From Polymyxa betae A26-41 (Eukaryota > Protista > Endomyxa: Phytomyxea), in contig RBZT01000373.1 in NCBI GenBank assembly GCA_003693705.1, positions 1 through 64,000 of the forward strand: a DNA stretch of 64,000 nucleotides. Direction: 5' to 3'. Shown here piece after piece: positions 47,124 through 52,510 of this stretch. The notes under the pieces were generated by a model, which saw nothing but the letters and a program-made list of their open reading frames with translations, was not told the origin of the DNA and searched no databases. Position 1 is the first letter of the stretch; every line of letters begins with the position of its first letter. Position numbers and translations under genes: made by a program.

Positions 47124-47141
47124 ACTACCGGTAGGTATACT

Positions 47142-47487
47142 GAAATCAGAATCAGAATTGGGAATGTCTTGCTAGAGCAGCACAAATTGACGCAATTTCT
47201 TTCATTTAGAAGTTTAGATGCAAGTCATTTGAAATCAAAATTGATTGGGAATGTCTTGCTAGTAGAACAGCACTAATTGACGCAATTTCTTTCATTTAGA
47301 AGTTTAGATGCAAGTCATTTGAAATCAAAATTGATTGGGAATGTCTTGCTAGTAGAACAGCAGTAATTGACGCAATTTCTTTCATTAAATTTTAAATGCA
47401 AGTCATTCCTACCGTATTGAAATCAGAATTGGGACTTGTCTTGCTACCGGTGAAACAGCACGTATTTAATTGGCGCGGTTTTATTTC
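47142..47487. repeat. 90-bp tandem repeat, three near-complete copies plus one degenerate partial copy
   Basis: The unit GAAATCAAAATTGATTGGGAATGTCTTGCTAG...AATTGACGCAATTTCTTTCATT...ATGCAAGTCATTT starts at 47231 and 47321, with variants at about 47142 and 47420. Confidence 0.95.
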
Positions 47488-47571: not shown

Positions 47572-48701
47572 ATGACAGGTCTTAGCAAAGAACAGGAATG
47601 CTTAAATTACGTGCAAGCTCACGCTAAGAAAGGTGATCCAGAATCAGGTAATACTTTGGCAAATCCCTTTGATAGTTTATTGAAACATTTGCTGTACGTA
47701 ACTGATTTTGAATATTCTTTTCTTAGGTAGTGAACTTTTGGAAATATGTTTGTCCTTAAATTATTGCTTAATGCTCGATGATAGTGCTTAACGCTATTGA
47801 CGAATTCTGCTCTAAGAACTGGATGATGAATGTTGGCGATGTCAAAGGCCAAATTGTGGAGAAGCAAATCCAAAAGCACAAGCCGAAGGTAACTGCTCAA
47901 AGCACCCGCTAATGTTTGGCTGTTTCAATGAGATCTGCGCGCCCTGCGATCTTCAGCTTTTATTCAGTATTGTTTAGGTGATTGTTGAAATCGGCGGTTA
48001 CTGTGGCTATAGCGCCGTTCGTTTCGCCCATTTACAGCGCCAGCTTGATCCTGATGCAAAGTACTACTCTTTCGAATTCTCTCCAGAGTACGCCAATATC
48101 GCAGCTCAGGTCTGAGAATTATTCATTGTTGTAGAATCCCAATTTTTGAATGTGCTGCTTGCACAGGTCATTTCATTTGCAGGTTTGAGCAATTATGTCA
48201 CGATCAAAGTGGGTCCTTTTGATCAGAACTTCCTGAAATCCGGTCTTCGCCAAGTAGACGTAAGGATTGGATGTTCTTGCTATTCTCTTTATTGACAGCA
48301 CCTATAGATGTTCTTCATTGATCACGCTAAAGAGCTTTATCTGCCTGATGTCAAGCTGATCATCGACAGTGGAACCTTGAAGAAGGTCAGTCGGGTTCAT
48401 CTGCTGCTGAAATAATCCATTATGCATTTCATATCATTTGGAAGCTCTTATTTTGCTATTCCTTTCTGCTTTTTGAGTTCAAATACTTTGTTATACAATT
48501 CAATTCTAAGCTTTGTTGTGGTCGATAAATTTCAACCAGGGATCCGTTATCGTGGCCGATAACATCGTTTATCCTGGCGCCCCTGACTACAAGAAATTCA
48601 TGCAGAACCATTCTCAATTCAAAAGCGAATTGGTTGATACATATCTCGAATACAGTGAAGACCAGAAAGACGCTATCATGTTCTCTGAATACCTGGGCTG
48701 A
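47572..48701 (+). CDS. COMT: Catechol O-methyltransferase-like, cytosolic copy
   Basis: [62 protein letters not shown] and LEY. Five introns. Confidence 0.93.
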
Positions 48702-48940
48702 TCAGAAGGCTCTAACACAATACTGTTCTCATTAAACATTTTGCCACTCGGCTTGCTATCAATGCTTGCATATCGCCTTGGTCCGGTTTATCCTACTATC
48801 CAGTAAAGTTATGTGCAGGTTTCTTCGCACGATGATGCAAGATCATGAGCAGGTCGTGCCATGCACTAAGTATTAACATAATGCATTACAGATAAAGGGA
48901 GAGGCCACACCCGGGTCACTTCATCATTAATCAAATCATC

Positions 48941-50011
48941 ATGTTTATTACACTATTCTACTGCCTCACCTTCGTAGCGGTTAAGGCACACTTTGCTAGA
49001 GCTACTCCTGGACAGCAGATCGAAATTAGCAAGGAACAAGCTCTCCTCGATTATGTATTTGAGAACGCTGAAAAAGGGAACGCCGAATCAGGTCTGATGC
49101 CTTATCCGCTCGATTCGTTTTCGTCCGTCAACCATGCCGACGATTGCTTCTGAGCAGGAATTTTCTGATACGAATCTGGGGCTCATTGAACGTGCGTACA
49201 GTATGGAAAGAAATGGACAATTTCAGCCTCGCGAATCCGATGTTGTTTGTCAGTGATATTAAGGCAATTATCATTGAAGAAGAGATCGCCGAACACAAAC
49301 CAAAAGTACTTTGGTTGCAATTTCCTGCATTTAGTGACTGTTATGTTTATTTGGCGTCAGGTCTTTCATGAACGCTCATCCTAATCATGGTTAACTCAGG
49401 TGATTGTGGAAATCGGCGGCGATTGTGGCTACAGCGCTGTTCGTTTCGCTCATTTGCAACGTCAGCTTGTTCCTGATGCCAAATATGTATCTTTTGAAAC
49501 ATGCCAACAACATGCGGATCTCGTTGCGACGGTATCAGGTTTAATGCTCTAACAATCTATCGCTCATGAATACATTTGTCATAGATTGTTTCATTTGCTG
49601 GATTAAGCAATGTCGTAGATATCCAGGTGGGCACTTTCACCGAAGATTTCCCACGATCGAGTCTTGGCGAAGTCGATGTATTGAACGCCTGTTATTCTAT
49701 AAAGCAACATTTGATTGTATCCACAGATGTTCATTACGGATCATTCCAAAAGTCGCGATCTGTCTGATGTCAAACTCATCATTGAAAGCGGGACTTTAAA
49801 GAAGGTAAAATTCTTCAAGTCGAAATCGGTTTGTAAATGGCCTTGCTAGGGCAGCGTTATCATTGGCAATAATATTCTATGCCCCAACACATCTGATTAC
49901 AAGGGATTCATGCATGATCATACCGAATTCAAGAGCGAGCTAATGGATACTGTCGCCGAATATTCAGTAGAAAACAAAGACGCTGTTATGATTTCCAAGT
50001 ATATCGGCTGA
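48941..50011 (+). CDS. COMT-like paralog with predicted signal peptide and divergent active site
   Basis: Same five intron positions as the upstream copy, an N-terminal extension MFITLFYCLTFVAVKA and [21 protein letters not shown]. Confidence 0.9.
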
Positions 50012-50441: not shown

Positions 50442-52510
50442 TCAACGCCCAGAACCTTCCACTTCAAAGGCAAATTCATCAAATGAGATCATCCCATCCT
50501 TGTCATGATCGAATTCACGAAAGATTGCATCAGATTGTTTAGCATCCAAATCCCATCCATTTAGGCCCAGCAGATGATCGAATTCTGTTTTCGATAAGAA
50601 CCCGTCCTTATCATTGTCGAAATTTCGGAACGTCTTTCGTAGAGCTGTGTTCTTATTGTTTAACAAAGCTCGTAATCCAGCTCGAACTTCTCTAAGATCC
50701 GTCCGACGTCGGTTATCGACAGATGGCGGCCAGATTTGGAGCAGCTGGCGTGTAGCTGTGTCAGCATCAATCAGCTCAAACACGAAGCTATGAATCTCAA
50801 CTCGGGCGCCGATCTGGAAATCCTCCATCTTGAACATGCGCTTCTTATCATGATTGTAAATCAGACTTCGTTCTAAGAACTGTCACGATAATACGTCAGC
50901 ACGAGTATGGTAGAAATGAACCCATTATTAAACAACATTAAAATCGCTTTAAAATCTGTGAGATCTCATAGTTCGAATTATGAATCCAATTTTTTTTTTT
51001 TTTTTTGATACACGTGAAACAATACTTCTTGTTTAAATTGAGCTGAATTACCTTTCCAGCAATAAATCCTGAATTTCGAATGGGATTCTCAAATACAGAG
51101 ACAGTCTCATCAACAGGAAAGAATGTGATCACAAACTCTCGAGCAACATCTTCAGGTCTATTTGATACTTGACGTGCCTTAAATCTCATTGCATGTTTAG
51201 CGAGCCGGCCATGATTTGGGTCAGGACGATTCCGCCGAGCTTTAAACGCCTTCTGAGCGGCCTCGATCGCCTCTTGCTCGCTCATCTCCTGCCCATCAAC
51301 ACCCTTCATATGATGCTCCAATTCGCCAGCAGCACCGTTGCCAACACCGTCAGATAATTCAATGCCGAATTGTGATTTGTAGTAGGTCTTGGTAAATGCA
51401 TCAGCACGCTCTAATACAACATCACGTCCAAATACACGAATAACGTGCCCGATCTGGAAATCGAGGGCGTTATAGCACTCAGATTTATCGGAATATTCAC
51501 CAATCTGATCAATACCAAACGCTGGGGTTGTCTTGCGCAGGCGTTGTCTCTTGACGAGGGCCGGTACGGGATCACGACCGGAATTAGCTTGAGCGATCTC
51601 CAGAACTTCAACCGTGTCATCGGCTAAGAAGTAGTGTACGACCAGATGACGATCATTCCAACGGGCCCAGAACCTTAATACCTTTGATCGAAGGGTTATG
51701 AGGGTTTTAGGGTTTACAGCGGATCTAGGGGAATACCTTTCCATCCAGAGCCAGGAACTGACGTGATCGCTCCAGTTGCCAGGGCTGTGGTCGTCCATGT
51801 ACAGATTCATAATGAGCTGATACAGGCTCATATTGGTCTGGTGATGATATCTTTGATAGGTGATGATGATGAAAGGGATCTGTTGGGATCTGCTCTCCTG
51901 ATTCCAATTCATTCCCATAAAACTGTCGTGTGAATTGATCAGCATCAACCAGACGATAAACACGTCCAAATATACAAATGTCTCTACGAGTCCCAAGATG
52001 CTCATAGGACAAGTACGGGGCCGTACTGGCCACATCGGTATCGGCGATGGAGACGCGGGCCCGGGCCAGTATGTCGCCATGACGCATTCCATTATTATCC
52101 TCTTTACATTCACTGATACGAATAGTTCCATCTTGTAGATAATACAGAAGGACGATGCGTATAAGACGATGGGATTCGATTTGTGATTCATGAACAGATT
52201 GTTGATAATATCCATAGAATCTTAGAACTTGTTGATCATAAGCGATCCATGATGGCAGCTGGCTCATTGTCACATCTGTATTCTTTAATCGTGTATGTAA
52301 ATCACTCTGTATCTTTGTAGTAATATCAGCTGGAACCCATTGAATGATATTGGTGTTAGCAGGTGCTATTGGAGTTTTATATTGTAATGGATCACATATA
52401 GCCTGACCATTGATTAGATCAAATCTGGTTGTATGTGGGAAATGATGTCTTGTTGATGGATTAATGCATTGACCAGGTAGAAATGGAATACGACGTTCAT
52501 CACCCACCAT
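50442..52510 (-). CDS. EFHC1/EFHC2 (Rib72)-like axonemal protein with three DM10 domains and EF-hands
   Basis: WIAYDQQVLRFYGY, DGKVLRFWARW..HYFLADDTVEV..NSGRDP, RNSGFIAGKFLER and two EF-hands (DNDKDG, DHDKDG). Confidence 0.92.

Follow-up and report, generated by a model that had tools for sequence, protein, structure and literature searches.

What has become of the second of two tandem catechol O-methyltransferase (COMT)-like genes in Polymyxa betae: does it still encode a working methyltransferase, and where would its product act? P. betae is a root parasite of sugar beet and the carrier of the virus that causes sugar-beet rhizomania, and to our knowledge almost nothing is known of how it deals with its host. 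The window analyzed here, 64,000 nucleotides of contig RBZT01000373.1, contains both genes on the forward strand, copy 1 at 47572-48701 and copy 2 at 48941-50011. The original prediction took copy 2 for a tandem duplicate that had gained a signal peptide and a remodelled active site, and proposed it as a secreted effector directed at phenolics. The pair allows a clean comparison, within one genome, of a canonical cytosolic enzyme with a sister that carries an export-type N-terminus, has lost a metal ligand and further core residues, and is intact and expressed.

Copy 1 is a canonical soluble COMT-like gene with six exons (47572-47647, 47785-47888, 47978-48109, 48167-48259, 48308-48385 and 48540-48701) that encode 214 aa. 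Copy 2 is a divergent paralogue whose model also has six exons (48941-49091, 49202-49305, 49400-49531, 49585-49677, 49727-49804 and 49850-50011) and encodes 239 aa. The introns of both are GT-AG throughout. Exons 2-6 are identical in length (104, 132, 93, 78 and 162 nt) and phase between the copies, so that all five intron positions are common to both, as had been predicted; all ten intron junctions recur in spliced RNA contigs from two independent studies. The two proteins share 58% identity over 214 aa without an indel, and 12 of the 25 residues encoded by the second half of exon 1 match. The 25-aa N-terminal extension, the intact reading frame and the four motif changes that had been read from copy 2 are present exactly as claimed.

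Both copies belong to the class I cation-dependent O-methyltransferases of the COMT type (PF01596, Methyltransf_3). Protein P0165, which is identical to residues 1-161 of copy 1, matches this Pfam family with 41.5 bits (cutoff 22), and local BLAST of the spliced copy 2 model against fetched COMT homologues gave E values down to 1e-54 over ~210 aa; exon by exon (25-53 aa each), only weak sub-threshold Pfam matches were obtained. Exon 6 of copy 1 matches COMT chains in the PDB (E = 2e-5) and aligns to residues 163-202 of the rat enzyme (1h1d). No PDB sequence matched exon 6 of copy 2 at E <= 10, which may be taken as evidence of divergence. In the phylogenetic tree the copies are sisters (support 100/98), in agreement with a tandem duplication. 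The pair is nested in a clade (99/93) otherwise composed of oomycete sequences and one long chytrid branch, and is sister to one oomycete subclade (94/83); the ancestral COMT gene may have been acquired from, or be common to, oomycetes. A contig of oomycete contamination was ruled out: the neighbouring EFHC/DM10 gene is plasmodiophorid (57-58% identity to Spongospora and Plasmodiophora proteins), identity to oomycete COMTs is only ~54%, and each COMT-like gene has five short introns. When the exon 6 alignment was run as a profile against 1.84 billion representatives, no copy 2-like or plasmodiophorid homologue emerged; word searches with P0030 and P0165 found no copy 2-like or Plasmodiophora/Spongospora homologue, and a metagenome scan with copy 2 exon 6 found nothing. 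Since a control search with the EFHC/DM10 gene did recover its Spongospora and Plasmodiophora counterparts, this absence is meaningful for annotated plasmodiophorid proteomes, as distinct from genomes.

The two copies differ most tellingly in their active sites. In COMT, D141, D169 and N170 form the metal triad that binds Mg2+, K144 is the catalytic base and E199 binds the catechol (PMC5001633; rat numbering is used throughout). Equivalents of D141, H142, K144, N170 and E199 are retained in both copies, and with them the catalytic base and the catechol-binding residue, as are E64, G66, G70, Y71 and S72 of motif I (E-x-G-x-x-x-G-Y-S) and the E90 equivalent. The W143 gatekeeper is absent from both, in a column that is variable across the family. 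The metal triad is complete in copy 1 and broken in copy 2, where the metal-site motif A-D-N-I-V-Y-P-G is replaced by G-N-N-I-L-C-P-N (49865-49888): codon 49868-49870 is AAT (Asn) in place of D169, and N170 and P174 are retained. The codon is assigned to this position because copy 1 exon 6 aligns to the corresponding part of 1h1d, together with a codon check, and the predicted D169N change with D141, K144 and E199 kept is borne out on both counts. The column holds D in 128 of 131 homologues. Immediately downstream, G175N with A176T and P177S (codons 49889-49897 encode positions 176-178) forms an N-T-S sequon, and D178 is conserved.

Further changes in copy 2 fall on positions that hardly vary elsewhere in the family. 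The loop over the SAM/substrate site (49237-49266) carries W38P, M40L, N41F, G43S and G47A, and the consensus among 135 homologues at the columns of M40, N41, G43 and G47 is M (95%), N (90%), G (98%) and G (96%), respectively. Y68 is replaced by D (GAT, 49421-49423) within an otherwise intact SAM-binding motif I, in a column that contains Y, F, H or W in 135 of 135 homologues and never an acidic residue. The D-H-x-K segment (49739-49759) is retained, with D141 at 49739-49741, H142, and K144 at 49748-49750; at its end Y147, which is Y in 130 of 132 homologues, is changed to D (49757-49759). Over 36 near-invariant family columns, copy 2 departs from the consensus at 11 and copy 1 at one (130 homologues: median 2, maximum 9), and copy 2 has the most departures among 132 sequences. 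This pattern is beyond chance and upholds the proposed remodelling, just as the single departure in copy 1 agrees with its description as canonical. Judged from its sequence, copy 2 is homologous to the COMT family, yet it is not a canonical metal-dependent member.

The second distinguishing feature of copy 2 is its 25 additional N-terminal codons (48941-49015), which are present in the gene model and in the RNA contig. A hydrophobic core of 13 residues spans positions 2-14, with a mean Kyte-Doolittle value of 2.35, and the uncharged run of 13-14 residues from Met1 is ended by K15 in the stretch K-A-H-F-A-R-A. Rule-based (-3,-1) cleavage candidates with small residues (A-x-A-type) lie after A16, A21 and G24. 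The n-region contains no basic residue, the 19-residue hydrophobicity window is borderline (1.67), and only ~10 residues separate the uncharged run from the first conserved helix. Copy 2 has gained two N-glycosylation sequons, and direct reading of the sequence after the signal revealed no host-targeting motif. Within the transcript no AUG comes before that at 48941 (the contig that begins at 48907 has no earlier ATG), and this is the only in-frame start between a stop at 48893 and the part of exon 1 conserved with copy 1. A downstream translation start was ruled out, since protein-level conservation between the copies extends over the second half of exon 1 and 48941 is the sole in-frame ATG upstream of it. 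Because the nearest relatives, the oomycete COMTs, have hydrophilic N-termini with no hydrophobic segment, copy 2 has gained its hydrophobic N-terminus. A search of the parasite's own genome for a donor of the signal-peptide exon returned only the self-match, and thus no sign of exon shuffling. The predicted resemblance to a signal peptide stands as a hydrophobic gain and as a rule-based likeness to a cleavable signal; the N-terminus resembles a cleavable signal peptide more than an anchor of the membrane-bound COMT (MB-COMT) type, and a role as an ER signal peptide is the most likely one.

Membrane or secretory forms are not unusual in themselves, because about a third of the family (~35% of 127 full-length COMT homologues) has an N-terminal hydrophobic segment, TM-like in 24 of these (at least 17 residues). 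Moreover, TOMT offers the precedent of a Golgi signal-anchored COMT paralogue that works without the COMT catalytic residues (PMC5462536). Both observations favour a membrane-anchored parasite COMT, similar to MB-COMT or TOMT, that would sit on an internal membrane by an uncleaved anchor and serve the parasite's own metabolism or act as a non-enzymatic chaperone. However, anchors in the homologues comprise 17-34 residues inside extensions of 40-60 aa, and copy 2 has neither a TM helix of 17-25 residues nor a stem of the MB-COMT/TOMT type. Its short uncharged run lies at the extreme N-terminus and leads straight into small residues at -3/-1, and the whole 25-aa extension contains no stem, so that we regard an anchored COMT as improbable.

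Transcript data show that copy 2 is expressed. Copies 1 and 2 give separate transcripts, with a depth of zero at 48815-48905. The copy 2 junctions were seen in RNA contigs of runs X3 and X5, and its word depth was 124 and 327 in two runs, one from each of two studies, or roughly half the copy 1 value. These spliced contigs indicate expression during infection and dispose of non-expression, which the original prediction had named as grounds for rejecting it. No reads of P. betae were found in the raw-read RNA runs X18 and X9. Intron 1 of copy 2 (49092-49201) is mostly spliced as modelled, with word depths of 105.7 (X3) and 186.9 (X5) for the canonical junction. At an alternative 3' splice site, 49158, whose use lengthens the message by 44 nt and puts it out of frame, the word depth was 48.3 (X5), and a form with the intron retained had 38.7 and 79.6; the predicted products of these forms are truncated (53 and 70 aa). 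Between a quarter and 40% of the contig depth may come from transcripts in which intron 1 is retained or mis-spliced, with assembled-contig depth being a poor measure.

Copy 2 evolves ~12 times faster than copy 1 (branch lengths 0.895 vs 0.073), copy 1 is the better-scoring of the two for 216 of 217 homologues, and relative-rate tests between them gave chi-square values of 6.7-18.7 (p from 0.01 to 1.5e-5), all of which identify copy 2 as the derived copy, as originally claimed. Silent sites are saturated between the copies (pS 0.79, with differences at 26 of 44 four-fold sites), dN is 0.30 and pN/pS is ~0.3. Because the frame, splice sites and length are intact despite this saturation, we conclude that copy 2 has been selectively maintained. 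A redundant duplicate drifting under relaxed constraint, whose hydrophobic N-terminus would have arisen by chance from an upstream ATG, could account for the loss of several near-invariant active-site residues, for the transcripts spliced unproductively at intron 1, and for the lack of a copy 2 orthologue in the profile, word and metagenome searches. Conserved columns within copy 2 also show no significant protection (11 of 36 family-conserved columns changed vs 79 of 178 others; Fisher p = 0.14), a result equally compatible with a simple loosening of the former catalytic constraint and with a new function. Nevertheless, at saturated silent sites such a duplicate would hardly have kept 239 codons open, free of indels and with ten splice signals intact and in use: the frame stayed open in only 6 of 20000 neutral simulations. 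The pN/pS ratio, and a word depth that in two studies reaches about half the level of the canonical copy, point the same way, and we consider drift very unlikely.

On balance, we lean towards copy 2 being a working, selectively maintained COMT offshoot of the secretory pathway, which binds SAM and has ceased to be an ordinary Mg2+-dependent catechol methyltransferase. The two genes, alike in their six exons, would go back to an old tandem duplication in the Polymyxa lineage; their ancestor was probably a canonical cytosolic catechol-type O-methyltransferase, preserved almost unchanged in copy 1. In copy 2, exon 1 would have been extended upstream by 25 codons, so that the protein starts with a short hydrophobic stretch and A-x-A-type cleavage motifs, and D169, Y68, the M40/N41/G43 loop and Y147, all near-invariant, would have been replaced while the Rossmann SAM-binding core was kept. 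The product would then enter the secretory pathway, still bind SAM, and serve either as a methyltransferase with altered metal or substrate needs or as a non-catalytic binder. We infer that the signal peptide functions and is cleaved, that SAM is bound, that catalysis is lost or changed, and that the protein is destined for the host cytoplasm, the parasite surface or the spore wall.

With these features, copy 2 is a reasonable candidate for a secreted enzyme or decoy. That it is an effector passed from the intracellular plasmodium into the beet root cell, where it would methylate or sequester catecholic or phenolic compounds that serve the host in defence or as signals, is a tentative reading that we think rather unlikely. 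A secreted copy 2 might instead act on extracellular structures of the parasite itself, such as the zoospore cyst or the resting-spore/sporosorus wall, and not on host metabolites. No finding contradicts this directly; the objection to it is that SAM is not expected outside cells, so that a true methyltransferase would have to act within a compartment or in the host cytoplasm. The same signal-peptide evidence (the 13-residue core and the (-3,-1) sites) would apply to such a target, which also agrees with the signal not being followed by a host-targeting motif. Polymyxa infections have moreover been described as symptomless (PMC6328671), so that heavy host manipulation is not required; even so, a target in the parasite's own structures seems doubtful to us.

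Mammalian COMT (rat and human S-COMT and MB-COMT; PDB 1h1d, 1vid and 3bwm) is 48% identical to copy 1 over 161 aa. Motif I and the E90, D141, H142, K144, N170 and E199 equivalents of the mammalian enzyme are common to both copies, and copy 2 departs from it by D169N, Y68D, M40L, N41F, G43S and Y147D. MB-COMT has 19-25 hydrophobic residues in an extension of 47-53 aa, as against 13-14 in 25 aa. The nearest sequences found were oomycete COMT-like proteins of Pythium oligandrum (TMW65309.1; 54% identity to copy 1), Globisporangium ultimum (K3X7V4; 53%) and Phytophthora spp. Unlike copy 2, these have canonical active-site columns, and none shares its changes; the sole apparent N at the D169 column among them, in P0168, looks like a gene-model variant of P0161.

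PbBSMT of Plasmodiophora brassicae is a secreted SABATH-type salicylate/benzoate methyltransferase with an N-terminal signal peptide, for which activity has been reported and which is discussed as a host-directed effector. It shares with copy 2 a plasmodiophorid origin and the background of a SAM-dependent small-molecule methyltransferase, and differs in that the SABATH family is unrelated to the class I cation-dependent enzymes. Of the parallel originally drawn between the two, the difference in family stands and the effector role is an analogy only. PbBSMT was the only plasmodiophorid methyltransferase effector treated in the papers retrieved, and no relevant paper paired catechol O-methyltransferase with Plasmodiophora or with effector or signal-peptide terms (the pairing with Polymyxa lay outside the search). 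Should copy 2 prove to be secreted and to bind or modify phenolics of the host, plasmodiophorids would have made convergent use of small-molecule methyltransferases, and if it is a true effector, it would be the second, independent recruitment of such an enzyme after PbBSMT.

TOMT/LRTOMT, a COMT paralogue with altered active-site residues, functions independently of the COMT catalytic residues (PMC5462536). It resembles copy 2 in having a substituted Mg2+ ligand and in its place in the secretory pathway, which for copy 2 is putative. It arose by a duplication independent of the Polymyxa pair and, unlike copy 2, has a true signal-anchor TM helix with a stem of ~20 aa and resides in the Golgi of animal hair cells. 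The ligands lost are also reversed: TOMT keeps the D169 equivalent and has lost D141 and N170, whereas copy 2 has lost D169 only. If copy 2 is catalytically dead, it would provide a protist case of a COMT-derived pseudoenzyme beside animal TOMT.

Two COMT-like genes lie in tandem on the plus strand, a canonical copy 1 (exons 47572-47647, 47785-47888, 47978-48109, 48167-48259, 48308-48385 and 48540-48701) and a divergent copy 2 (exons 48941-49091, 49202-49305, 49400-49531, 49585-49677, 49727-49804 and 49850-50011), modelled from the sequence as proteins of 214 and 239 aa. All ten introns have GT-AG borders, exons 2-6 are identical in length and phase between the copies, and exon 1 of copy 2 exceeds that of copy 1 by 75 nt. 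The proteins share 58% identity in a gap-free alignment over 214 residues, and these are the only COMT-like loci in the genome. The matching exons 2-6, together with junctions seen in RNA, confirm the tandem pair with common intron positions described in the original prediction. A large exon on the minus strand (50941-52215), some 0.9 kb past the end of copy 2, carries a 425-aa open reading frame of the EFHC/DM10 type, a domain of flagellar protofilament-ribbon proteins. Its top match is an unnamed ENA protein (60% identity), its best named relatives are from Spongospora subterranea (58%) and Plasmodiophora brassicae (57%), and all remaining matches reach at most 41%. The contig is therefore plasmodiophorid, which rules out a contaminant. 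Between an upstream minus-strand gene and copy 1 lies a tandem repeat (47141-47407; 3.0 copies of a 90-bp unit, 92% matches) that stops about 100 bp before 47510, where the RNA contig of copy 1 starts.

Assembled contigs of two RNA runs from separate studies (X3, 2017; X5, 2022) reproduced all ten splice junctions with no base differences and, being spliced, represent RNA; copy 2 is thus transcribed, contrary to one outcome that would have undone the original prediction. Zero depth at 48815-48905 in both runs places the copies on separate transcripts. Word depth, a rough measure, was about half as high for copy 2 as for copy 1 (124 versus 247 and 327 versus 757). Two raw-read RNA runs that were also searched yielded no reads from Polymyxa betae. 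The RNA contig of copy 2 starts at 48907, the stretch 48907-48941 contains no ATG, and an in-frame stop at 48893 lies upstream of 48941, the sole in-frame ATG able to start exon 1. In the second half of this exon, 12 of 25 residues are conserved relative to copy 1 despite saturated silent sites, so that exon 1 is translated in the modelled frame; this conservation and the single in-frame ATG rule out a downstream start. Of the ten introns, only intron 1 of copy 2 (49092-49201, plus strand) shows alternative forms in the RNA contigs: it is also retained, or spliced to another 3' site at 49158. Both variants close the frame, after 70 or 53 residues, and their products break off just past the putative signal peptide and first helix.

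Homologues were searched exon by exon, and spliced proteins were compared by scripts only; single exons of both copies gave only weak Pfam matches. A profile of two exon-6 peptides retrieved 140 proteins from 1.84 billion representatives; COMTs of Phytophthora and of animals came from word searches that used two fetched proteins as queries. The closest full-length relatives come from oomycetes and bear the name catechol O-methyltransferase, among them those of Pythium oligandrum (54% identity to copy 1), Globisporangium ultimum (53%) and Lagenidium, followed by chytrid and zoopagomycete proteins; copy 1 is 48% identical to mammalian COMT. No Plasmodiophora or Spongospora COMT homologue occurred among the profile and word search matches; their proteomes were searchable in the database, since a control search with the EFHC/DM10 frame retrieved them. 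Nor did the profile search, the word searches or a metagenome scan reveal a protein resembling copy 2. A careful maximum-likelihood tree of 54 sequences placed the copies as sisters (100/98) inside a clade (99/93) whose other members are oomycetes plus one long chytrid branch, with the pair sister to one oomycete subclade (94/83). This affinity could stem from differential loss or from an ancient transfer among root dwellers.

Several fetched homologues are unusual in themselves. P0165, from a contig of 981 nt, passes PF01596 and equals copy 1 residues 1-161 (47572-48259) at 100% identity. Its GenBank title is 'hypothetical protein BVRB_020520, partial [Beta vulgaris subsp. vulgaris]'; it looks like Polymyxa DNA that entered a sugar-beet assembly and received a plant annotation. 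In P0004 (Lagenidium giganteum, 483 aa), a single polypeptide holds two full COMT domains one after the other, with about 45-47% identity to copy 1 apiece, representing either a fusion or neighbouring genes merged by the gene model. P0040 (406 aa) and P0095 (447 aa), from Logan contigs, have a long N-terminal part with hydrophobic segments, a C-terminal COMT domain, and asparagine in place of both D141 and D169 (rat COMT numbering); they appear to form a separate COMT-like lineage without metal ligands.

Divergence is concentrated in copy 2. Copy 1 outscores it against 216 of 217 homologues, the terminal branch of copy 2 in the 54-sequence tree measures 0.895 and that of copy 1 0.073, and relative-rate tests on amino acids against seven outgroups gave chi-square values of 6.7-18.7 (p 0.01 to 1.5e-5). 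At the 36 columns with at least 80% conservation across 135 full-length homologues, copy 2 departs 11 times and copy 1 once; the other 130 scored sequences have a median of 2 and a maximum of 9 departures, all fewer than copy 2. Its departures are M40L, N41F, G43S, G47A, F139I, Y147D, A168G, D169N, G175N, P177S and a shared D-to-E change. Copy 2 also has D in place of Y68, where all 135 homologues carry Y, F, H or W. All motif changes originally quoted for copy 2 were recovered in the alignment with copy 1, and D169N was verified: codon 49868-49870 reads AAT and corresponds to D169 because copy 1 exon 6 aligns to rat COMT residues 163-202. In COMT, Mg2+ is bound by D141, D169 and N170, the catechol hydroxyls are held by K144 and E199, N41 contacts the SAM carboxylate, and Y68 is required for efficient methyl transfer (PMC5001633). 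Copy 2 retains K46, E64, G66, G70, Y71, S72 and the E90 equivalent, as well as H142, N170, P174 and, as predicted and upheld by alignment and codon check, D141, K144 and E199. The SAM-binding core accordingly looks intact, and the predicted metal site and the lid above the methyl donor and substrate are altered.

These changes could represent plain decay, which we consider very unlikely. Between the copies, pS is 0.79, dN is 0.30, and 26 of 44 four-fold sites differ (dS about 1.2 or more); this saturation, with introns lacking clear similarity, indicates an old duplication. Despite it, copy 2 has kept 239 codons open with no indels and all splice signals, whereas simulated neutral change to the observed divergence left the frame open in just 6 of 20000 sequences. 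Overall, purifying selection acts on copy 2, at a branch dN/dS of roughly 0.3-0.5 derived from branch asymmetry rather than fitted. As a caution, its changes affect 11 of 36 family-conserved columns and 79 of 178 others, a protection that is not significant (p = 0.14). Judged from the substitution pattern, the old catalytic constraint is largely gone, and another constraint presumably keeps the protein together.

The hydrophobic core of copy 2 spans 13 residues (2-14; mean Kyte-Doolittle 2.35) and is ended by K15, small residues at -3/-1 mark candidate cleavage sites after residues 16, 21 and 24, and past these sites copy 2 begins almost exactly at the start of copy 1. The arrangement agrees with the classical plan of a cleavable signal peptide in eukaryotes, and we infer a signal function. 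An uncleaved anchor like that of mammalian membrane-bound COMT (MB-COMT) or the animal transmembrane O-methyltransferase (TOMT) would have precedent, as about one third of family members carry an N-terminal hydrophobic segment (MB-COMT-like); these are typically 17-34 residues long within 40-60-aa extensions, and a predicted core of 13 residues is too short to span a membrane, making an anchor improbable. The closest relatives, in the oomycete clade, have hydrophilic N-termini, so parsimony favours acquisition of the hydrophobic N-terminus by copy 2 over its loss from copy 1. An own-genome search with the putative signal-peptide exon found no second locus like it. Two N-x-S/T sequons are likewise new in copy 2, one arising from a change adjoining the metal site.

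The observation as a whole is confirmed and its evolutionary interpretation well supported; the functional interpretation is a reasonable hypothesis. We slightly favour a scheme in which an old tandem duplicate would have entered the secretory pathway through an upstream extension of exon 1 and been freed from the constraint of Mg2+-dependent catechol methylation, most likely retaining SAM binding. Under this scheme, copy 2 would with roughly equal weight be a methyltransferase whose metal or substrate requirements have changed or a non-catalytic binder. Delivery into the host cell, with host phenolics as targets, is put forward only tentatively; it is plausible in a biotroph living inside cells, where SAM and Mg2+ would be available. 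A role at the parasite's own wall or surface, which overlaps with secretory redirection, is likewise a minor possibility.

Copy 1 is an ordinary COMT-type class I O-methyltransferase. With N at position 169, copy 2 breaks the D141/D169/N170 triad and is thus homologous to COMT-type enzymes without being a canonical member. A literature search pairing catechol O-methyltransferase with Plasmodiophora found no paper among those covered, and one combining it with signal peptides and secreted pathogen effectors together returned only an unrelated serum-proteome study. The proposed parallel with PbBSMT, the SABATH-type methyltransferase of Plasmodiophora brassicae, holds as an analogy of role and no further: both would combine a signal peptide (putative in copy 2) with a small-molecule methyltransferase in a plasmodiophorid, but the two methyltransferase families are unrelated. 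TOMT, an animal COMT paralogue in the secretory pathway, has substituted active-site residues and functions independently of them (PMC5462536), and copy 2 shows a similar evolutionary pattern.
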